This document shows, piece after piece, positions 2,118 through 13,716 of a stretch of DNA of 33,641 bases. The notes below the pieces were generated by a model. That model saw nothing but the letters and a program-made list of their open reading frames with translations. It was not told where the DNA came from and did no database searches. Both the position numbers and the translations under genes were made by a program. The first letter of the stretch is position 1. The number at the start of each line of letters is the position of its first letter. Where the stretch lies: sequence record AJ748296.1, one strand, 5' to 3'.

Positions 2118-2426
2118 ATGGAATTTGAAGATTTAGATGTAGTTCTATATGTATTTTTTGAAAATCCAGAAATGAAAAGTTTTGAATTTGAATTTAAACA
2201 ATTATTTGAAACTACTGAGAGCGGTTTAAGATATCTGATAGGAGTTCCAGATTCAAGAAATAAAATCAAAAATAATAATGAAATTATTGAAGAATTTATA
2301 TATTATCAAAATGATGATATTGTTACTAAGTTGATATTTTATTATACTAAAGGCACGAATAGAATTTATATAAGAAAAATTTACGGCTGGAAAGAGAAAA
2401 GATTAGAGTCTGAAGATGAAGAATAA
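2118..2426 (+). CDS. AcrID1-family paralogue, 102 aa
   Basis: MEFEDLD..L..FFENPEMKSFEFEF start and EFIYY..KLIFYY....IYI..I..W end match the AcrID1-like pattern at 31642; acidic. Confidence 0.65.
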   Translation: MEFEDLDVVLYVFFENPEMKSFEFEFKQLFETTESGLRYLIGVPDSRNKIKNNNEIIEEFIYYQNDDIVTKLIFYYTKGTNRIYIRKIYGWKEKRLESEDEE

Positions 2427-2726: not shown

Positions 2727-3044
2727 ATGAATTATATGATTTTCAATTCATTAATTGTTCAAAAATATATTTTAAATAATGCAAAAGCAGTTGCTACAAT
2801 TAGGAAAAAAGGTTATTATAAATTATATCAAAAAATTATTTTGAAAGTTGGAGATAAAAGATTTTATGGAAAAGTTATCGCAAAAGCTCCAGTTACTGAA
2901 TATTGTCTTTCAAAATATGTGAAATTTAGCGGATTTGAAAATGTTGAGAATTGGTTAAATGAAGCTAAAAGACTTCATAATGATAAAATAGATTTTGAGA
3001 GATATGAAATTATTGTAATTTGGATAAATGATTCATTCTTCTAA
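2727..3044 (+). CDS. ASCH/PUA-like domain protein, 105 aa
   Basis: KAVATIRKKG, VGDK and KFSGFENVENWLNEAKRLH match the ASCH pattern K.ATiR...GD...eGF.s.eef. Confidence 0.65.
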   Translation: MNYMIFNSLIVQKYILNNAKAVATIRKKGYYKLYQKIILKVGDKRFYGKVIAKAPVTEYCLSKYVKFSGFENVENWLNEAKRLHNDKIDFERYEIIVIWINDSFF

Positions 3045-3953
3045 TTCTATACTATTTTTCTTTTTATTTTGTTGTTTCTCTTTCTTTAACTCATTTGCAA
3101 TTTTATAGTTCTGAATTATTTCAGTTACTAAACTATCAAGTCTCATTTTCCTTAATTTTTCTGCATATATCGTATATTTATTTTTTATATTCCAATTATT
3201 ATATTTTAAAATCCAGGCATTCATAGTTTTTAAAATTTTTACATTTGAGAAATCATATTCAAATGGAAAATTTGTTTTATCTAAGAATTCGAAAAGTTTC
3301 TCTTCTTCTTCTTTTGTTAAAGTTCTTTCTTTTCTATCTCCTACATATCTTCTAGTTCCATCAAACCAAAAAATTTCACGATAGCTTGCTGTTTTTGTAT
3401 AAGTTGTAGTATCCATAGAGTTAGCCGTATCAAAAATTTGAAGAAAATATGGAGCAGACATACCTAGAACATGTAGTCTTTTTACATATTTTCTAATATA
3501 ATAATACCACGGAAATGTATAAATTAAAATTTTTAATTTACTAGATGCAATTATTCCGCCAAATGCAATATAATCAGTATATTGGCTATAAAAATCTATA
3601 GCTTCATCTACTTCTCTAGTTGGATAAAGATGTATAACTGGGATAATTCTTTCTATATATTCCATTTTCGTATATAGATATTCGAAATATTCAAAATTCT
3701 TTCTATCAAGAGGAGAAAAAATAGATGGAATATCAAGAGAAAAAAATGCATAAGCATTATACGTTTTGTATTTTTCTAATACATCTTTTACTGAAATTTT
3801 TAAATTGTATAACGCAATTTGATAGCCACCGCTATCGACCCAAGTTTCATTTTTCCAGGTTATCTTTTTGTTTCGTAATTGATTGATCAAAATTGGAAAA
3901 TTTATTTTAATTAATAAATCTTGTGATGAGACAATTCCAAATACTATTTTCAT
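3033..3953 (-). CDS. TGT/DpdA-like guanine transglycosylase (SIRV1 ORF306)
   Basis: Motifs WVDSGGYQ, SLDIP, IPVIH, AFGG, HVLG, MDTTT of the TGT TIM barrel; no CxCxxC zinc site. Confidence 0.85.
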   Translation of the reverse strand: MKIVFGIVSSQDLLIKINFPILINQLRNKKITWKNETWVDSGGYQIALYNLKISVKDVLEKYKTYNAYAFFSLDIPSIFSPLDRKNFEYFEYLYTKMEYIERIIPVIHLYPTREVDEAIDFYSQYTDYIAFGGIIASSKLKILIYTFPWYYYIRKYVKRLHVLGMSAPYFLQIFDTANSMDTTTYTKTASYREIFWFDGTRRYVGDRKERTLTKEEEEKLFEFLDKTNFPFEYDFSNVKILKTMNAWILKYNNWNIKNKYTIYAEKLRKMRLDSLVTEIIQNYKIANELKKEKQQNKKKNSIELEE

Positions 3954-3961
3954 ATAGCTTT

Positions 3962-5161
3962 CTATTTTGGTATGACATTTATTTTACTTTTTCTTAATAA
4001 GTATACTATAGCTCCTATTATTGGTAATATCATAATTCTTAATATTGTATATTCTATATTTCCGGCAATTACAAATTTATAGAATATTGGATTTTGATAT
4101 CCTAGATAAAAGAATAGGAATATCTGAATTGCTAAAGATGTTAGAACTATAGAAAATAATTTTTTATCATTCATAAGTTTCAAATATGCAAATGCTACAA
4201 TTATGAAGTTCCAAAATATGAATAATAATCCGTCTAGTCCGAAAGATATGTTAAATCCTAGCAAGTTTTCTAGAACATTTGCTATTGTTTCTGTTGAGAA
4301 AATTAGCAATAAAACATTTGGATTTATTTTGCTAAATTTTTCTGGTAATACTTTATCAAAACTCATAGTTTGAATTAATCTACTTTGGATTTTATTTGCA
4401 ATTGGCATGTAACTAAAGAACCAAATTGGCATTAGTGCAAACAATATGTTTAAATTTGAATAGCTATCTAGAATTGATAATATTGCTACGACACCATAAC
4501 TTACAAAATATCCTATCATACTTGATTTTTTAATATTTTTAATTTCTCCAGCTATATAACTAATTGCATTTATGAAAATGAAAGCAGATAAATCAAATAG
4601 TAAAGCAGATAATAAAGTATTAGAAATTGTGAAAGTCTGATATTGATAATTGAAAGATTTAAAAGCTATAAATATTGCAATTATTATTTGGAATATTGCT
4701 AATATGTCTACAATTTTTGCATATATTCTCTTACTTGCTATAATTAGTAAAACAAGAGGAAATAGAGATTCGACAATTAGAAATTGTTCAAATTGATTTT
4801 GAATATTAAAGTTTAAGAGTACAAGATCTCCTAAGATTGGCTGAGATAGTACATATGTTAGCCATAATGAAATTCCAAAAATTGTGTAAAATTTTGAAGA
4901 AAATGCAGTTCTAATATAGGCGTAATCACCGCCATTTAATGGAAATTTTGTTGTTAGTTTATAGTACATTAAAAGAAGTGGAATTTCAAATACTGCTCCA
5001 ATTACAATTGCAAAAAGTAGATTTACATTTTTCATTAGACTTGAAACAAATAACGGATAACTTATTCCGCTTAAAATTCCCATATAGAGAAGATTTATTG
5101 AAAAAATATCTAAAACATTAAATGATTTAATTATTCCAGAACTTTTTCTTTCTAATTCCAT
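3962..5161 (-). CDS. APC-superfamily amino-acid permease-like membrane protein (ORF399)
   Basis: About 11-12 hydrophobic segments; N-terminal RKSSG..KSF..LD.F..NL..MG..SG..YP and P.NGGDY.YI motifs of archaeal APC permeases. Confidence 0.8.
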   Translation of the reverse strand: MELERKSSGIIKSFNVLDIFSINLLYMGILSGISYPLFVSSLMKNVNLLFAIVIGAVFEIPLLLMYYKLTTKFPLNGGDYAYIRTAFSSKFYTIFGISLWLTYVLSQPILGDLVLLNFNIQNQFEQFLIVESLFPLVLLIIASKRIYAKIVDILAIFQIIIAIFIAFKSFNYQYQTFTISNTLLSALLFDLSAFIFINAISYIAGEIKNIKKSSMIGYFVSYGVVAILSILDSYSNLNILFALMPIWFFSYMPIANKIQSRLIQTMSFDKVLPEKFSKINPNVLLLIFSTETIANVLENLLGFNISFGLDGLLFIFWNFIIVAFAYLKLMNDKKLFSIVLTSLAIQIFLFFYLGYQNPIFYKFVIAGNIEYTILRIMILPIIGAIVYLLRKSKINVIPK

Positions 5162-6868: not shown

Positions 6869-8191
6869 ATGAGTGGAAACCAGCAAACGAACTCTCAATT
6901 GTTTGAAAAGTTAAAAAGTCATTCTTTTTTTTATAATCCAAGAGATAATGAAAGAATTTTAAGTCTAATTCTTGGAGAAAAACAAGTTGAAGAAAATAAG
7001 AAAATTGAGATTTTAAAAGCTTATAAAAGAGGAATAGATTCACAATATTTTAGTGCTAATTTGCCATATTATAACGAAATAAAATTTATTTCTAAGATAA
7101 CTGGATTTAAGGTAAAAGATGATCTAGTTATTGCAAAATTTCAAAATGGATTTACTGGTGATTTTGATCCTCATGAAATTGCAGATAATCCAGATGATTT
7201 TTACAACCTAATTTCTTCATATATGTTTGTAAAAATTAAAAAAGGATCAGAAAATTGGTTTATTGATGAAATATTTTCTATTGAACCTCCTAATAATTTT
7301 GAAATTGCAAAAGAAATTCTAGAAGAAGCTGATAAAGAACATTTAACTTATGCCGTTTTACTTCAAGCTTTTGGCTATGATTCGCAAAAAATGGATTCAG
7401 ATGATATTTTTCTAACTTTACCGCGATTATTTCCATTATTTAAATCTCCAATTACTAAGAGACAAATTAATACTATTGAAATTTCAAACCGCGGAACTGG
7501 AAAAACTACAACATTTATGATTTTACAAGAAGTTTTCAATTTCAGATATTACACTGAACCGCCGACTTATGCAAATTTAATATATGATGCTAGAAATAAT
7601 ATGTATGGTTCAGTATTTTTATCGAATGGATTAATTTTTGACGAAATACAAACTTGGAAAGATGGATATGCAGTTAAAGAACTAAATTCTATAAATTCCA
7701 CTCTTTCAACTGGAATTGAAAATTGTATATGGACTAGAGGCGCCGGTACAGAAAGTAAATCTGCTACAATTCAAAAATGTATTCCAATAATTTATGCTGG
7801 AAATCCATTTTCACTAACTCTAGATAAATATCAAACTCCAGATATAGAATCATATTTACAACAATATGAAATTTTTACGCCTGCAATTCTAGATAGAATT
7901 CATATTATTCAATTAGCAATTAAGAAAACTTATGATAAAATAATAAATGCTAGAGTTCTATATCCTTCAATTCTAAGAGCATTAGTAGAATTAATTCAAG
8001 AAAAAATTAACAGAACTACAAATTATGCAGATTGTGGGAATTTGGAAAGTAGGAGAAAAGAACAATCTATAGATATTCAAATAGTTCTACAAGCACTTGA
8101 TATAGATCTGCAAATTGGAAAAGTTTCAAATGAAGAAGTATGTAATAAAATTGTGAATTTAATGAGATTTAGTAATTTAGGAGGATGGTAA
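6869..8191 (+). CDS. AAA+ ATPase, BrxL/Lon_2-like (ORF440, gp18 family; ssDNA annealing)
   Basis: Walker [10 protein letters not shown], Walker B LIFDE, sensor YAGN, arginine finger ILDRIH. Confidence 0.88.
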
Positions 8192-8808
8192 TCATGAATT
8201 ATGAAGATCATATAAAAGAAAGCTTTAAAGTTAAATATCCTGCAGATACGATTTTTCCATCTGAAGTTGGTATTTGTTATAGAAAAAGTTATCTTGCTAG
8301 AAATATTGAATTTGAAAGAGGAATAAATGAAATTTATTTAGATTTAGGAGAACAATATCATGAGAGAATTGAACAATATTTTAAAGAAAAATTGAATTGT
8401 CAAACTGAAGTTGAAATTAAAGATGAAATTGAAGGAATAAAAATTAGCGGTAGAATTGATATAGTTTGTAATAATGACTTATTGGAAATTAAAACAATTA
8501 GTTATAATTATTTTCAAGTAAAAGAATATCACTTATATCAAGTTGCATTATATTATCATATTCTTAAAAAGCAAAATTATCAAATTAATAATGTCTATAT
8601 TATATATTTAAATAGGAATACTAGAGAAGTTAAGCAATTTAAAATTGATGAAAAAGTTTTAGAAAATTATTATCAAAAAGTTATTGAATGGATAAAGAAA
8701 TTTAAAGAATATCTAAAAGAAACAGATTATAAAAAAGTCCCAGGAGTTAACAATTATATTTGTAAATCATGTGAATTTAAACAAAAATGCATTATATCAC
8801 TTTTTTAA
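8185..8808 (+). CDS. Cas4-like RecB-family nuclease (ORF207, gp19 family)
   Basis: N-terminal Cys (GICYR), G..YH, GRIDIV, LEIKT, QVALY and C-terminal [10 protein letters not shown] Fe-S cysteines. Confidence 0.92.
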
Positions 8809-8871
8809 TGAAAAAATAGAAGAGTAAAAAGGTATTTAAATGTCATATTCGAAAAACTTAAAATAGAGAAC

Positions 8872-9117
8872 ATGAGTCAAATAGAAGAAATCATAAAAAG
8901 TTTAAATAAAAAAGATATAAAAGATATAATAACCAAGAATATTATTTTTTTAGTTGAACCTCAAATCTTGTTTTATGCAAAAAAGAGAAATAGGATAGTA
9001 GGATATCTAGAAATTGCAGAAAAACATTATCGTTTTGAACTAATATTTAGTAAAGATAATAGCGTAAGTGTAACAATTGGAGAAGTAATAGTGTTTGGAA
9101 ATGGTGAATTGAAATGA
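8872..9117 (+). CDS. Hypothetical 81-aa rudiviral protein
   Basis: Clean ORF after a TGTCATA promoter box at 8841; stop overlaps the next ATG. Confidence 0.75.
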
Positions 9118-9293
9118 TGAGAATTGTCACTTTTAAAATTCCAGATGAAATGTTATTATTACTAGATGCATATGCAATAAAGCACAAGATGAATAGATCA
9201 GAAGTAATAAGATTAGCAATAGAGAAATTAGTAGTAGATGAAATGAAAAATGAACCAGTACCAAGAGCTAAAGTTGAGAAAATAAAGTTCTAA
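9114..9293 (+). CDS. 59-aa RHH/CopG-type DNA-binding protein; not in the ORF track
   Basis: Manual translation [59 protein letters not shown]; TF.IP...L..LD......NRSEVIR.AI is a classic RHH; ATGA coupling to ORF81. Confidence 0.88.
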
Positions 9294-9312
9294 AAATTAG
9301 GGTGAAAAAAAC

Positions 9313-9849
9313 ATGACAGAACAAACAAAATATGTAGAACAATTAAAAAATATTGTAGATGCAATTTTAGAGAATAAAAGAATATTAGTTTATAGAAATG
9401 AAATTAATAAAGATCTAGACAATTATTTCACATTATACTATAATGATAATGATAGTGATTATGACATTTTAACAATTCCATTTATTCTAGAGAATTTAAA
9501 AGAAGAAAAAGATGTTCTAATATATTTTTATGAAACTGAGAAATTTAATATAGATGAATTATCAGAATTAATTGTAGATTACATAGATTACAAGAAAAAG
9601 TCCTGTCTAACAAAACATTTAGTGTATTCTGAATTATTAAGATTAATAGATCTATATAATTATAAAATTTCTGAAGATTATAGTAATTTCAATAAAAATA
9701 CATTTTCAGGCGAAATTAAATATTTAATAATGTTTAATTCAGATAAATATTCTACAATTACAGAGAAAATAGAATATTGTAATTACTGTATGCATGATAA
9801 AAATGTAAGTGTAGGAGTTCAAAAATGTGTAACTTATAAGTTAGAATAA
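9313..9849 (+). CDS. Hypothetical 178-aa acidic protein
   Basis: GGGTGA RBS; Tyr/Asp-rich; C-terminal CNYC motif. Confidence 0.75.
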   Translation: MTEQTKYVEQLKNIVDAILENKRILVYRNEINKDLDNYFTLYYNDNDSDYDILTIPFILENLKEEKDVLIYFYETEKFNIDELSELIVDYIDYKKKSCLTKHLVYSELLRLIDLYNYKISEDYSNFNKNTFSGEIKYLIMFNSDKYSTITEKIEYCNYCMHDKNVSVGVQKCVTYKLE

Positions 9850-9858
9850 TTTATTTTT

Positions 9859-10335
9859 TTAATCTTCTTTTGCTAAAGTTACTCCTTTTTGATTTTGATA
9901 TTTCCCGTTATAAGGCTTTTCAACTGGAGTTAAAGTATGGGCGAAAATTAAATGTAAAAATCTTTCTCCTGATTTTAATTTGACAGGAATTGAAGAACCA
10001 ACTAATTCTATAGTAAGTTGACCTTCAAATCCCGCATCTACAATTGTCGGCGGAATTAATAATCCTTTTCTTGCGAAAGTTGATCTTAAATTACAAAATG
10101 CTATAATATCATTTGATAATTTTATATATTCTTTTGTTGTTAAAAGTACATGTTCATTTGGATAAATTATAAATTCATCTCCTACTTCTTTTTCCATATT
10201 TTCTTTTATCCTAACTATTTCATTTCCAATTTTTAAGTCTACACCGTTTTCTCTAATTGTATCTTCACTTAATGGATCTATAACAAGCTTATTTGAATTT
10301 ATATATCTTTTTATATCTCTATCTGAAAGAATCAT
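9859..10335 (-). CDS. dut: dUTPase (dCTP deaminase/dUTPase family)
   Basis: [36 protein letters not shown] and YNGKYQNQ motifs. Confidence 0.95.
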
Positions 10336-10347
10336 CTTTTCTCAGTT

Positions 10348-10653
10348 TTAACTATCGTTTTCTGACATATTTATATCTCCACAGATTGCCGAAATTTTAA
10401 ACATATTTTTATCATATCTCCAATTTACTTTTATATAATTTGGATATTTGAAAGTACGAACTAAATATTTTAGCATAGACATCCCGGCTTTTTCATATTC
10501 TTTCTTTTTCATATTTATTTTTATTTGCATTAATATTATTTCTTCATCTTCAAAAACATTAAAGAAATAAATATTGTCGGAATATCTACTTTCTAGCCAA
10601 TTTCGGAATTGAATTATATATTTTCTACATTCATTCTTTATATCAATTTCCAT
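10348..10653 (-). CDS. Hypothetical 101-aa protein
   Basis: Clean ORF upstream of dut on the same strand; TGTCATA box at 10670-10676 (minus strand). Confidence 0.75.
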   Translation of the reverse strand: MEIDIKNECRKYIIQFRNWLESRYSDNIYFFNVFEDEEIILMQIKINMKKKEYEKAGMSMLKYLVRTFKYPNYIKVNWRYDKNMFKISAICGDINMSENDS

Positions 10654-10773
10654 ATTTTAGTTAAGCAGATATGACAATTTAATAGTTTTGTGTATTACAT
10701 TATATAGTATAATATATAGTATATAATTTCCGGGATTATTTTCATAGTAATTTTTACAAATCTTAGTAGTCAT

Positions 10774-10791
10774 ATACATTATATTATGTAT
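10774..10791. promoter_or_regulatory. Palindromic box ATACAT-N6-ATGTAT upstream of the coat-protein gene
   Basis: atacat tatatt atgtat, 50 nt before the ATG at 10842. Confidence 0.6.
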
Positions 10792-10841
10792 AAGACGTGA
10801 AAATTTATTAATTTAAAGAATAAAATTGATATTGACCAAAA

Positions 10842-11246
10842 ATGGCAAAAGGTCACACAAAAAGATCATATAGCCAAAGGTACGCAAAATGGCAAGCCAA
10901 ATTTAATGCGTTTAGTAACCCAACAGTAGCATCTACTATATTGTCAAATGTAGCTCCTGTTGCCCAACAGAATTTCCAGACTAATGTCCCAACATTTACC
11001 GCGGTTAACGAAAATGTTAGTGCAGTTCTTTCACAATATGGAATAACTGGGCCTAACAGAGCTATATATCAAGGTTTTGGTTTGAAGATTGCTAGAGCAC
11101 TTAATAGGATTGGGAGCGGGCCAGCTTTAGTAAATATGATAAACGGTTTGAAAAGTTATTATATTTCAGCTTTTAACGCTAATCCTCAAGTATTAGATGC
11201 TGTAGTAAATATAATAACTGGAAGCCCGACTGGATACGTAAGTTAA
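10842..11246 (+). CDS. Major coat protein (ORF134, SIRV2-fold MCP)
   Basis: MAKGHTKRSYSQRYAKWQAKFNAFSNPTVAST... recognisable rudivirus MCP with a basic N-terminus. Confidence 0.96.
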   Translation: MAKGHTKRSYSQRYAKWQAKFNAFSNPTVASTILSNVAPVAQQNFQTNVPTFTAVNENVSAVLSQYGITGPNRAIYQGFGLKIARALNRIGSGPALVNMINGLKSYYISAFNANPQVLDAVVNIITGSPTGYVS

Positions 11247-11280
11247 AATATTTAAGCTATTTTTTTCTTTTTTTCTTTAT
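11247..11280. terminator. T-rich convergent terminator between MCP and the zinc-finger gene
   Basis: Run ttttttcttttttcttt directly after the MCP stop. Confidence 0.5.
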
Positions 11281-11444
11281 TCTTCTTCAGTCTTTATTTC
11301 TATATATTCCCCAGTTCTCAAACTTATCCTCCTACAATTAGATAATTTTAAATTTGTATTATGCTTTCTTAAATGAGTTATCATACTTTTCCTTTTTATA
11401 TAAATTTCTCCACAAATTGGACATTCATATCCTAAGAGTGCCAT
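11277..11444 (-). CDS. C2H2 zinc-finger protein (55 aa from ATG 11444)
   Basis: YECPICGEIYIKRKSMITHLRKH; the track extends to a TTG at 11489 but ATG 11444 is the likelier start. Confidence 0.85.
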   Translation of the reverse strand: MALLGYECPICGEIYIKRKSMITHLRKHNTNLKLSNCRRISLRTGEYIEIKTEEE

Positions 11445-11576
11445 AAGGAGAAATTTGGATTTGACATTTTTAAATGCTATTAAATCCAATCAACCATATA
11501 CATTATATAATATATATGAATTATAGGTTAAGTTGTTAGTCAGCTTTATTTTTGTCATAATTTTTATTTTTATCTC

Positions 11577-12584
11577 ATGAAAACTGCAATTTTAACTATG
11601 AATTATTCTTCTATATCTAATGTTTCTGAAGATATTGCAGAAGTTTTGAGAGAAAATGGAGAAATCGTAACAATAACAAAAAATCCATTTTATATTCCAA
11701 AAGCTGAAAAATTAATAGTTTTCATTCCATTCCATCCGCCATCTCTAAATCCATATCTTTATGCTTTTTATCAATTTAATGGAAAGAAATTATTTTATAC
11801 TACTTGTGATGGAATTCCAAATATTGAAATTGTAAATAAGTATTTATTACAAGATGTTAAATTTATACCAAATTCAAAATTTTCAGCTATGAATTTACAA
11901 GAAGTAGGTCTACAAACAGATTTGCCAGTTTTCCATGGAATTAATTTTAAAATTGTAGAAAATGCCGAAAAATTAGTTCCACAATTAAAACAAAAGTTAG
12001 ATAAAGATTTTCCTAACACGATAAAATTTGGAATTGTGAGTGGATTAACAAAAAGAAAAAATATGGATTTAATGTTACAAGTTTTTAATGAACTAAATAC
12101 AAAATATCCAGATATTGCTAAAAAAATTCACTTTTTCGTAATTTCTCATAAACAATTTACGCAAAATGAAGTTCCCGCAAATGTACATTTTGTAGCAGAG
12201 TTTGGATTTAATAGTAGAGAATATATATTTGGATTTTATGGAGCTATGGATTATATTATTGTTCCAAGTGGAACAGAAGGATTTGGAATGCCAGTCCTTG
12301 AGAGTATGGCTATGGGAACTCCAGTTATCCATCAACTTATGCCCCCGTTTGATGAATTTACAAGCTGGCAGTGGAATTTATTAATTAAATCTTCAAAAGT
12401 TGAAGAATATTATGATAAAGAGCATGGACAAAAGTGGAAAATTCATAAATTTGAAATTGAAGATATGATAAATGCAATTATATTAGCTTCTGAACTTCAA
12501 GATAGAGAAGAAAGAAGTACTAAATTAAAAGAATTAGCAAAAAGATATGATATAAGAAATTTATATACTAGATTTTTAGAATGA
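11577..12584 (+). CDS. GT-B (GT4) glycosyltransferase (ORF335)
   Basis: RKN motif and PSGTEGFGMPVLESMAMGTPVI (E-X7-E). Confidence 0.93.
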   Translation: MKTAILTMNYSSISNVSEDIAEVLRENGEIVTITKNPFYIPKAEKLIVFIPFHPPSLNPYLYAFYQFNGKKLFYTTCDGIPNIEIVNKYLLQDVKFIPNSKFSAMNLQEVGLQTDLPVFHGINFKIVENAEKLVPQLKQKLDKDFPNTIKFGIVSGLTKRKNMDLMLQVFNELNTKYPDIAKKIHFFVISHKQFTQNEVPANVHFVAEFGFNSREYIFGFYGAMDYIIVPSGTEGFGMPVLESMAMGTPVIHQLMPPFDEFTSWQWNLLIKSSKVEEYYDKEHGQKWKIHKFEIEDMINAIILASELQDREERSTKLKELAKRYDIRNLYTRFLE

Positions 12585-12634
12585 TATAAATTTGTCATAT
12601 TCTTTATATTTTTATAGAGGAAAGAGGTGGAAAA

Positions 12635-13105
12635 ATGGTAATCGAAGTATTTTATATGTGTCCAATTGATTATAAAGATATTTTAACTCTTGACCTAGAT
12701 AAAGGAGGCATAGCAATAAGAGAATGTGATCATGTTTTTGGTTATATAATACCGCCTTCATTTCCGGAAAGAGAAGATAAAATTTGTCCTAAGCAATACA
12801 GAATTAGAACATGGACTGCTAATGAATGGAAATATGGAGTTTGTGTACAATCTAATGTATCATCTAAACATGTAGTTAGGAATATAAAGAAATTGAAAAA
12901 AACATTGAAAGAATTGTTGAATTATCGGGAAGACCAAATAATATATTTCATTCTTGATGGTTCTACAAGAAGAGAAATTATAGATAAGATAAAGGATATG
13001 ATAAAAGATATGTTTGTTGGTTATAAAGCAGATAGCGAATTTTGTACTCCTAAAATTATTACTATAGTAGGAGTTCTAAATAAAGTAACAATTTATTTTC
13101 TTTAG
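12635..13105 (+). CDS. Hypothetical 156-aa Cys-containing protein
   Basis: GAGGTGG RBS; TGTCATA box at 12593. Confidence 0.8.
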   Translation: MVIEVFYMCPIDYKDILTLDLDKGGIAIRECDHVFGYIIPPSFPEREDKICPKQYRIRTWTANEWKYGVCVQSNVSSKHVVRNIKKLKKTLKELLNYREDQIIYFILDGSTRREIIDKIKDMIKDMFVGYKADSEFCTPKIITIVGVLNKVTIYFL

Positions 13106-13166
13106 CCTTCTTCATTCTTATTAATATAAATTTGTCATAATACATAATATATAATAATGATAGAGA

Positions 13167-13295
13167 ATGAAAGTAAAAATAATATGTGAAAAATTAACTA
13201 CATTTCATATAAATTCTGAAGATGAAGAATTAGTAAATAGAATAATAAAAATGTGTAATGATTATAATTTAAATTACAAAATTGAACTTGAATAA
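13167..13295 (+). CDS. Candidate 42-aa small protein; not in the ORF track
   Basis: MKVKIICEKLTTFHINSEDEELVNRIIKMCNDYNLNYKIELE*; own TGTCATA box at 13133; fills the gap and ends 5 nt before the convergent ORF64. Confidence 0.55.
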   Translation: MKVKIICEKLTTFHINSEDEELVNRIIKMCNDYNLNYKIELE

Positions 13296-13300
13296 TTTTT

Positions 13301-13495
13301 TTACCATATTCCCCATTCTTTACTATCTATAAGTTTCATTTTTCCATTTTCTATCATATTTGCATAATCTTTTAATATTTTTGGCAATACTTTTTTTAAT
13401 TCTTCTTCTGTTGGCTTATTTGGAACTTGATCAATTAAAATATAAATCTTAATATGTAATTCTTTATTTTTTTCATCATAATAATAAGTTATCAT
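13301..13495 (-). CDS. Conserved rudiviral 64-aa protein
   Basis: Clean ORF with ATGA coupling to the upstream gene. Confidence 0.75.
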   Translation of the reverse strand: MITYYYDEKNKELHIKIYILIDQVPNKPTEEELKKVLPKILKDYANMIENGKMKLIDSKEWGIW

Positions 13496-13716
13496 TTTTG
13501 ATCCAACTTCCTTTTTATTTCTTCAACTTGTCTTGATAATTCATCTTGTTTTATTTTTAATTCTTCAATTTCTGTCTTTAGATTTGATAATTCTGAATTT
13601 ACTATCTCTTTTACTGCATCTTTTAATGCCTGTTTAATTTTTAGATATAATTGAATAATTGCAAATAATGTAGTTGTAGTAGTGGAAATTATAGTGAGGA
13701 CTAATGTAGTCTCACT
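13492..13716 (-). CDS. Membrane-anchored coiled-coil protein (74 aa from MSETT)
   Basis: Hydrophobic N-terminus then heptads ELSNLKTEIEELKIKQDELSRQVEEIKRKL; start at 13716 overlaps the ORF110 stop. Confidence 0.75.
   Translation of the reverse strand, partial: SETTLVLTIISTTTTTLFAIIQLYLKIKQALKDAVKEIVNSELSNLKTEIEELKIKQDELSRQVEEIKRKLDQK

Follow-up and report, generated by a model that had tools for sequence, protein, structure and literature searches.

Sequence record AJ748296.1 holds the linear genome of SIRV1 variant XX, a rudivirus whose host is Saccharolobus islandicus LAL14/1, and its entire 33,641 bp constitute the window analysed here. Its minus strand carries ORF306 (3033..3953), the gene of a 306-residue protein (CAG38826.1) that is predicted to be a DpdA-like guanine/7-deazaguanine transglycosylase, composed of a TIM barrel with the tRNA-guanine transglycosylase (TGT) fold and a helical C-terminal region. 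The protein is named 'hypothetical' in GenBank, and the 99.7% identical SIRV1 copy goes by the name of 'queuine tRNA-ribosyltransferase' in RefSeq. Its frame is open for 306 codons, which at 25% G+C would happen by chance from any one start with a probability of ~1.5e-12.

As a single sequence ORF306 yields no significant match in Pfam, NCBIfam or the PDB, and the Pfam TGT family PF01702 is absent even at E<=1; its homology becomes visible only via family profiles, PHROGs or structure. PHROG 887, 'queuine tRNA-ribosyltransferase', is matched with E=3.5e-72, and 105 relatives came to light when 5.8 billion proteins were searched. Two profiles of the family were used, a narrow one from a 25-sequence family alignment with identity down to 26%, and a broad one comprising 68 sequences. 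Against the PDB the narrow profile finds the Pyrococcus horikoshii archaeosine TGT (arcTGT; E=3.5e-4) and Salmonella DpdA (E=8.6e-3) and no bacterial TGT chain, while the best match of the broad profile is the arcTGT catalytic domain (E=6e-41, 144 bits, residues 48-351). PF01702 is missed by ORF306 itself and matched at E<=1e-3 by 51 of the 68 wider family members, so that membership in the Pfam family is established through intermediates only. The AlphaFold2 model of ORF306, in which the C-terminal third is helical, has a predicted local distance difference test score (pLDDT) of 91.5 and a predicted template-modelling score (pTM) of 0.89; the best 50 Foldseek matches of this model in the PDB are all TGTs (probability 1.00, E ~1e-8, TM score ~0.57), and in BFVD it hits phage DpdA-type proteins, among them DpdA2 of Vibrio phage nt-1 and DpdA3 of Cellulophaga phage phiST. 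Profiles, conserved residues and the predicted structure make it highly probable that ORF306 is an active guanine/7-deazaguanine transglycosylase.

The catalytic motifs by which the first-pass annotation had singled out the gene (DSGGYQ, LD, PVIH, HVLG and DTTT) were all located on the minus strand, with key residues that are invariant among the 25 relatives. DSGGYQ (residues 40-45; 3819..3836) contains D40, the predicted general acid/base and the equivalent of Asp95 of arcTGT and bacterial DpdA. SLD (residues 72-74; 3732..3740) ends in D74, predicted to be the base-recognising aspartate that corresponds to Asp130, and PVIH (residues 105-108; 3630..3641) ends in H108, opposite which bacterial DpdA has His181, phage DpdA1 a histidine and TGTs a glutamine. 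FGG (residues 131-133; 3555..3563), with the invariant G132, is the glycine-rich loop that contacts the 7-substituent in TGT and DpdA. HVLG (residues 161-164; 3462..3473) fits the H-x-[LF]-G pattern of DpdA and arcTGT, where bacterial TGT has YLMG, and DTTT (residues 181-184; 3402..3413) begins with the predicted nucleophile D181, whose counterparts are Asp249 in arcTGT and Asp256 in bacterial DpdA. The roles of the aspartate triad in general acid/base catalysis, base recognition and nucleophilic attack are those described by Gedara et al. (PMC10164549). The narrow-profile alignments pair D40, D74 and D181 with Asp95, Asp130 and the nucleophilic aspartate in both P. horikoshii arcTGT and bacterial DpdA, and profile alignments likewise equate H108 with His181 of Salmonella DpdA ('VAHGW'). 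Invariant across the 25-sequence alignment are D40, S41, G42, G43, Q45, L73, D74, P76, P105, H108, G132, H161, L163, G164 and D181; in the 68-sequence set the triad D40/D74/D181 still shows no variation, and at least 90% of the sequences keep H108. Judged from these alignments and the model, the motifs of ORF306 do not owe their presence to chance.

Several features bear on the polymer that such an enzyme would modify. With 0 cysteines and only 2 histidines, both of them invariant among relatives, ORF306 cannot form a CxCxxC..H zinc site, as the first-pass annotation had observed, and the Pfam scan and the AlphaFold model give no PUA, C1/C2 or further Pfam domain, in keeping with its remark that an archaeal PUA extension is missing. 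The NCBIfam TgtA model (TIGR00432) leaves ORF306 unmatched and scores its cellular homologue at 19 bits versus a cut-off of 350. A histidine at the H108 position also occurs in phage 9g DpdA1 and in the DpdAs of Knocker and a Synechococcus phage (the phage forms are PCFH, PVWH and PTFH), whereas arcTGT and Escherichia coli Tgt have glutamine. The same three phage proteins resemble ORF306 in having His for Gln, H-x-[LF]-G and D-[ST]3 and in being devoid of CxCxxC, while E. coli Tgt shows Q, YLMG, DCV and CDCYTC at the corresponding places. The absence of zinc ligands was considered as a novelty of ORF306 and rejected as such: CxCxxC is missing in 4/4 viral DpdAs compared (9g DpdA1, Knocker, Synechococcus phage and HVTV-1 DpdA4), so that its loss fits a viral DpdA and is nothing special.

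Scoring of all seven reference sequences against both profiles in one run gave 39.3 bits with the narrow and 79.3 bits with the broad profile for Synechococcus phage DpdA, 32.2 and 60.6 for phage 9g DpdA1, 25.7 and 144.6 for the arcTGT core, 24.0 and 33.0 for the DpdA of mycobacteriophage Knocker, 20.0 and 57.2 for the bacterial DpdA core, 6.9 and 42.6 for E. coli Tgt, and -2.1 and -1.5 for HVTV-1 DpdA4 (HVTV1_69). DpdA1 is thus mildly favoured by the narrow profile, and the order is reversed by the broad profile, which takes in zinc-bearing short archaeal relatives and puts arcTGT first.

Some more specific identities could be discarded on these grounds. The scores of HVTV1_69 with the two profiles reject an assignment to DpdA4 (DUF6610), the type found in haloarchaeal tailed viruses. 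The RefSeq name, queuine tRNA-ribosyltransferase, is not supported, given the 6.9 bits of E. coli Tgt and the absence of the Q/YLMG/DCV/CxCxxC motifs, and the archaeosine enzyme TgtA is dismissed by the lack of C-terminal domains, 0 cysteines, His for Gln and the failure to match TIGR00432. Nor is ORF306 the bacterial DpdA of a Dpd system, since it has neither the zinc site nor the Ins8 insertion, and no DpdB or dpdC-K is annotated in the genome; its cellular relatives are accompanied by a HerA-like ATPase and a NurA nuclease instead.

Comparison with characterised proteins sharpens the picture. That preQ0 is put into DNA by phage DpdA1 (Enterobacteria phage 9g gp03, and the DpdA of CAjan) is proven (Hutinet et al. 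2019; PMC6884629). DpdA1 shares with ORF306 a TGT-fold barrel of ~280-320 residues, the D-S-G motif, the histidine, H-x-[LF]-G and D-[ST]3, and the absence of a zinc motif or RNA-binding domains, and phage DpdAs are the best of the references against the narrow profile (32-39 bits). It differs in its identity of only ~15%, its long separate branch in the tree, DSGAF instead of DSGGYQ, and a genomic setting in which the phage 9g gene adjoins folE, queD, queE and gat-queC, none of which accompanies ORF306. Bacterial DpdA (Salmonella Montevideo, PDB 7UI4) offers Asp95, Asp130, His181 and Asp256 as counterparts of the ORF306 residues; it acts on double-stranded DNA, has ~400 residues with a CxCx2Cx22H zinc site and the large Ins8, and requires the ATPase DpdB (PMC10164549), whereas ORF306 has 0 Cys, 306 residues and no DpdB-like neighbour. 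P. horikoshii ArcTGT (PDB 1IQ8), the best solved-structure profile match of the family, has the DSG-FQ, LDIP, HLFGAG and D-S-A-S motifs in common with it, but is a protein of 582 residues with C1, C2 and PUA domains, a zinc site and a glutamine at the position of His108.

The closest relative of ORF306 with any experimental data is STSV2_15 (ORF18 in STSV1) of the Sulfolobus bicaudaviruses, which shows 41.5% identity across 87% of the protein and agrees with it in length class, motifs, absence of CxCxxC and a host from the Sulfolobales. STSV2_15 has been called a DpdA, and STSV2 DNA contains dCDG (2'-deoxy-7-carboxy-7-deazaguanine) at 149 per 10^6 nucleotides, equal to 0.04% of G (Cui et al. 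2023; PMC10516641). STSV2 carries in addition an ArcS-core gene (STSV2_16) that SIRV1 does not have; conversely, the permease gene that neighbours ORF306 has no equivalent beside STSV2_15. According to Cui et al. 2023 (PMC10516641) the STSV2 host has no proteins of the queuosine/archaeosine (Q/G+) pathways. We find that this host, Sulfolobus tengchongensis (CP146016.1, 1133917-1152801), possesses a DpdA-like/ArcS-core pair of its own, together with a HerA-like/NurA block, and the dCDG of STSV2 might hence stem from host enzymes, viral enzymes or both.

This pair belongs to a cellular gene cluster. A chromosomal TGT-like protein of the Sulfolobales (for example AGJ61500.1 of LAL14/1) is 38-40% identical to ORF306 over the full length, has all catalytic residues in common with it and is annotated as 'tRNA guanosine transglycosylase family protein' in S. 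islandicus, S. solfataricus, S. shibatae, Acidianus and S. tengchongensis. In the chromosome the genes for the DpdA-like protein (294 residues), DUF5591/ArcS core (188), a HerA-like ATPase (537), a protein of 1012 residues, a coiled-coil protein of 229 and a NurA-domain nuclease (363) follow one another in this order on one strand, with overlaps or gaps from a few to tens of bases. The cluster was found in S. shibatae, in S. islandicus including LAL14/1 (CP003928.1, 7917-26801), in S. tengchongensis, in Acidianus and in several metagenome-assembled genomes. Diverged lineages show other orders: a 408-residue protein, HerA-like, a 1495-residue protein, DpdA-like and DUF5591 in one, and DUF5591 followed by DpdA-like, convergent with HerA-like and a 1428-residue protein, in another; one further locus has DUF5591, DpdA-like, HerA-like and a large protein. 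The link to HerA-like and giant proteins is absent in Ca. Aramenus and at one lone locus. The viral gene retains no partner of the cellular operon and has acquired a Lys-rich tail as well as a permease gene beside it.

For the HerA-like and NurA genes of the cluster, a canonical DNA-repair pair was considered and rejected, the HerA-like protein reaching 98 bits versus a cut-off of 800 and the operon being without Mre11 (no metallophosphatase match); no Rad50 above cut-off was found in it, the 229-residue protein being weakly like the coiled-coil segment of Rad50. PADLOC detects generic HerA models only and no known defence system, the 1012-residue protein has no PDB or NCBIfam match, and no paper describing a Sulfolobales DpdA-like/DUF5591/HerA-like/NurA cluster was found in the literature searched. 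A radical SAM gene ~7.5 kb upstream was rejected as a RaSEA-like archaeosine enzyme, being a peptide maturase of the TIGR04084 SPASM type. The recurrence of DNA translocase and nuclease neighbours is the best new argument suggesting that the family acts on DNA, and the neighbourhood suggests that the virus may copy a self-mark of its host.

The relationship between viral and cellular proteins is resolved by phylogeny. A profile search of 1.84 billion representatives gave 1264 relatives at E<=1e-3, among which the zinc motif is missing in the closest ~35 representatives and present in most remoter ones. In the maximum-likelihood tree the rudiviral proteins form one clade (support 100/99), sister to proteins of an uncultured rudivirus-like contig, and this joint clade is nested within a clade of chromosomal Sulfolobales proteins (100/100). 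The phage DpdAs lie on a long outside branch of this tree. The topology indicates a chromosomal Sulfolobales gene as the source of ORF306, and the host LAL14/1 has this gene too. STSV2_15 stands apart from the rudiviral clade with Saccharolobus and Aramenus proteins and is 66.7% identical to a Saccharolobus chromosomal protein, and the STSV2 ArcS2 is 62% identical to a cellular DUF5591 protein. From the separate branching of the rudiviral and STSV2 proteins we infer two independent captures from hosts, the rudiviral one being, by its position in the tree, separate from and older than that of STSV2. Two further loci are of note: a contig of JGI 3300045878 (8090-13608) carries a diverged family member alone, without DUF5591 or HerA, which is divergent from a gene for a 633-residue radical SAM protein and adjoins ribonucleotide reductase, and in rudivirus SBRV1 the gene for a protein of the 'phosphoadenosine phosphosulfate reductase' family (1107-1919) lies ~2 kb from the DpdA-like gene. 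QueC and the phosphoadenosine phosphosulfate reductase fold are placed in one ATP-pyrophosphatase superfamily, and the SBRV1 protein might for that reason be part of a modification pathway.

On balance we lean towards the view that ORF306 is a DNA-guanine transglycosylase of the DpdA kind which uses a host-made 7-deazaguanine. In such a reaction D181 would attack a flipped-out deoxyguanosine of the double-stranded viral DNA at its C1', and D40 would protonate the leaving guanine and later deprotonate N9 of the incoming 7-deazaguanine, which could be preQ0 or 7-carboxy-7-deazaguanine (CDG). The base would be supplied by the archaeosine precursor pathway of the host, because the virus is without synthesis genes: tblastn with phage and halovirus proteins and two ArcS-core proteins detected no FolE, QueD, QueE, QueC, QueF or ArcS homologue in the window (best E=0.085), and RefSeq annotates no 7-deazaguanine synthesis gene in the near-identical SIRV1 genome. 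The first-pass annotation had likewise found neither folE nor queD, queE or queC in this DNA and had concluded that any precursor would be host-derived, which finds support in the literature, as S. islandicus has FolE, QueD, QueE, Gat-QueC and arcTGT (PMC6884629) and thus a full tRNA archaeosine pathway of its own. The outcome would be a few 7-deazaguanine marks per genome that may shield the DNA from a nuclease system of the host.

The assignment as such is not new. In their Supplementary Data, Hutinet et al. 2019 (PMC6884629) list CAG38826 as a singleton DpdA in the group of viruses that encode DpdA only; the study identified 12 Ligamenvirales and pointed out that all G+ pathway genes are present in Sulfolobus, so that the host could supply the precursor. 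The DpdA reading including the host precursor is therefore in print as a prediction, beyond which a search of the literature for rudivirus transglycosylase, DpdA or deazaguanine retrieved nothing except Cui et al. 2023, and the present finding is confirmatory. It agrees with the proposal of the first-pass annotation that ORF306 looks more like a DNA-modifying DpdA than a tRNA enzyme, to which His for Gln, the missing zinc subdomain and tRNA-binding domains, the likeness to STSV2_15 and the HerA/NurA neighbours all lend support. New are the origin from a host chromosomal gene, the operon context in the host and the repeated pairing with a permease in rudiviruses.

This permease, ORF399 (3962..5161, minus strand), is a member of the APC superfamily with ~10 hydrophobic segments and lies 8 nt upstream of the ORF306 start codon. 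Four diverged rudivirus lineages have it directly beside their DpdA-like gene, in three arrangements: SIRV4 (USA) has permease and transglycosylase in the same order as SIRV1 with a 4-nt overlap, in SRV the two genes are convergent, and an uncultured rudivirus-like contig has the opposite order and a permease 29-31% identical to the other two. In SBRV1 both genes are present but apart, and SSRV1 and ARV2 have the permease without a transglycosylase. Homologues of ORF399 were found in rudiviruses only. Among solved structures its profile comes nearest to GkApcT (E=4e-6) and AdiC, both of them amino-acid transporters, and its AlphaFold model, with a pLDDT of 42, is unusable. A role as nucleobase or preQ0 importer was entertained and is unsupported: no nucleobase carrier was matched, and SSRV1 and ARV2 keep the protein in the absence of the enzyme. 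A functional partnership of ORF306 and ORF399 is possible.

A number of observations weigh against a DNA substrate. Bacterial DpdA, like all TGTs, keeps the zinc site (PMC10164549), and the absence of zinc therefore separates ORF306 from TGTs and bacterial DpdA together and not from TGTs alone. By sequence the ORF306 family is about as near to arcTGT as to phage DpdA, and the disagreement between narrow and broad profiles means that sequence alone does not settle the substrate question; with arcTGT as the best solved match of the broad profile (144 bits versus 57-79 for DpdAs) the lineage looks archaeal-TGT-derived, its polymer specificity being unreadable from sequence. The window contains no ParB-like or HerA-like gene, although bacterial DpdA requires the partner ATPase DpdB, and no ArcS-core gene either. 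No 7-deazaguanine in the DNA of any rudivirus is reported in the literature searched, in which no experimental rudivirus work on the subject was found. The sole modification measured in a virus with a relative of ORF306 is dCDG, and not preQ0 or archaeosine; its level of 0.04% of G in STSV2 is very low, and the enzyme pair of S. tengchongensis itself is a possible source. On the cellular side the pair occupies a fixed syntenic chromosomal site and not a variable island, which is compatible with a housekeeping RNA role, and SSRV1 infects the cluster-bearing S. solfataricus and yet is without a DpdA-like gene. The fixed site and the case of SSRV1 also speak against reading the cluster as simple restriction-modification.

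These points feed into a different explanation, in keeping with the database name, in which ORF306 would be a minimal archaeal tRNA- or rRNA-guanine transglycosylase that introduces preQ0 at G15 or elsewhere in RNA of the host or the virus, and so tunes translation at high temperature or during infection. We regard this as unlikely, though there is substance to it. The attraction of the broad profile to the arcTGT catalytic domain and the PF01702 matches of 51/68 wider family members have to be set against the 6.9 bits of E. coli Tgt with the narrow family profile and against NCBIfam TgtA, which ORF306 does not match and which the cellular homologue misses by a wide stretch (19 bits versus 350). 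The tRNA enzyme ArcS has DUF5591 as its catalytic core, and the synteny of the cellular DpdA-like/DUF5591 pair across Sulfolobales genera has a housekeeping-like quality, yet HerA-like and NurA genes repeatedly adjoin the cellular homologues, and the host already has arcTGT and Gat-QueC. ORF306 itself is without PUA, C1 or C2 domains or a zinc subdomain and has a histidine where all tRNA TGTs have glutamine. The 7-deazaguanine of STSV2, which carries the nearest studied homologue, was measured in DNA, even if 0.04% of G might represent a side reaction. Another scenario, that ORF306 corresponds to the TGT-like N-terminal domain of a split archaeosine synthase (ArcS), detached from the rest and serving as a scaffold without transglycosylase activity of its own, seems very improbable. 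The N-terminal (Nt) and C1 domains of ArcS are separately encoded in some archaea (Cui et al. 2023; PMC10516641), and the cellular homologue always stands before or after a stand-alone C1/DUF5591 gene, but no C1 gene exists in the SIRV1 window, the NCBIfam ArcS models match the DUF5591 protein only (positions 201-405) and not the TGT-like protein, and a mere scaffold sits poorly with three catalytic aspartates, DSGG-Q and two histidines that are invariant across very divergent members.

Counter-defence of another kind could also be envisaged, whereby ORF306 depletes or diverts the preQ0/CDG pool of the host, alters marks on host DNA, or disturbs the DpdA-like/ArcS-core/HerA-NurA system from which it came, the permease perhaps altering substrate supply. 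We consider this improbable and know of no precedent. The capture of ORF306 without its ArcS-core partner from within a cellular clade (100/100) and its location in a genome arm with anti-CRISPR genes (AcrID1-family, 2118-2426) are in line with such a function; the purifying selection on catalytic and base-binding residues, however, fits ordinary base exchange equally well, and the adjacency of the permease in four rudivirus lineages loses force through the rudiviruses that keep the permease and have no transglycosylase.

The DpdA-like reading of ORF306 can be extended to a broader and more tentative proposal, which we think doubtful but worth stating: that Sulfolobales chromosomes, that of the SIRV1 host LAL14/1 included, carry an undescribed system which marks DNA with 7-deazaguanine and polices it, that rudiviruses and bicaudaviruses captured its marking enzyme independently for self-marking, and that rudiviruses coupled an APC permease to it. 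This putative archaeal counterpart of Dpd may consist of the zinc-less DpdA-like transglycosylase, the ArcS-core amidotransferase, the HerA-like translocase, the protein of 1000-1500 residues and, in Sulfolobaceae, NurA. If it exists, the otherwise unexplained dCDG of STSV2 would be accounted for, and 7-deazaguanines would be predicted in Sulfolobus chromosomal DNA. Should rudivirus DNA carry 7-deazaguanines, a hypermodified base of the model archaeal viruses SIRV1 and SIRV2 would have been overlooked for 25 years, and their interplay with restriction and CRISPR would have to be re-read. DNA deazaguanine chemistry would then reach the hyperthermophilic Crenarchaeota and their filamentous viruses, and the host gene cluster would offer a concrete and genetically tractable candidate for what such a mark protects against.

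The Lys-rich C-terminal tail KKEKQQNKKKNS (residues 290-301; 3051..3086, minus strand) is situated on a long terminal helix and is found in Sulfolobus rudivirus proteins (SIRV1/2/3 and Yellowstone relatives), but is missing in cellular homologues and in STSV2_15; a contact with nucleic acid is possible. ORF306 and ORF105 (2727..3044, plus strand) converge with a 12-nt overlap of their 3' ends (3033-3044), leaving no space for a terminator between these genes. ORF102a (2118-2426, plus strand) encodes a DUF1374 protein (E=2.9e-37) whose SIRV1 copy is named AcrID1-family anti-CRISPR in RefSeq, which places ORF306 in a genome arm that holds counter-defence genes. Assemblies that bear the names Streptomyces gamaensis, Planomonospora alba (here a contig of 32 kb), Paenochrobactrum glaciei and Nocardioides koreensis include contigs with 84-85% identity to ORF306 and 82-92% to ORF399. 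These rudivirus-like contigs in four bacterial assemblies are almost certainly contaminating rudivirus DNA, which explains the RefSeq label 'MULTISPECIES ... [Bacteria]'.

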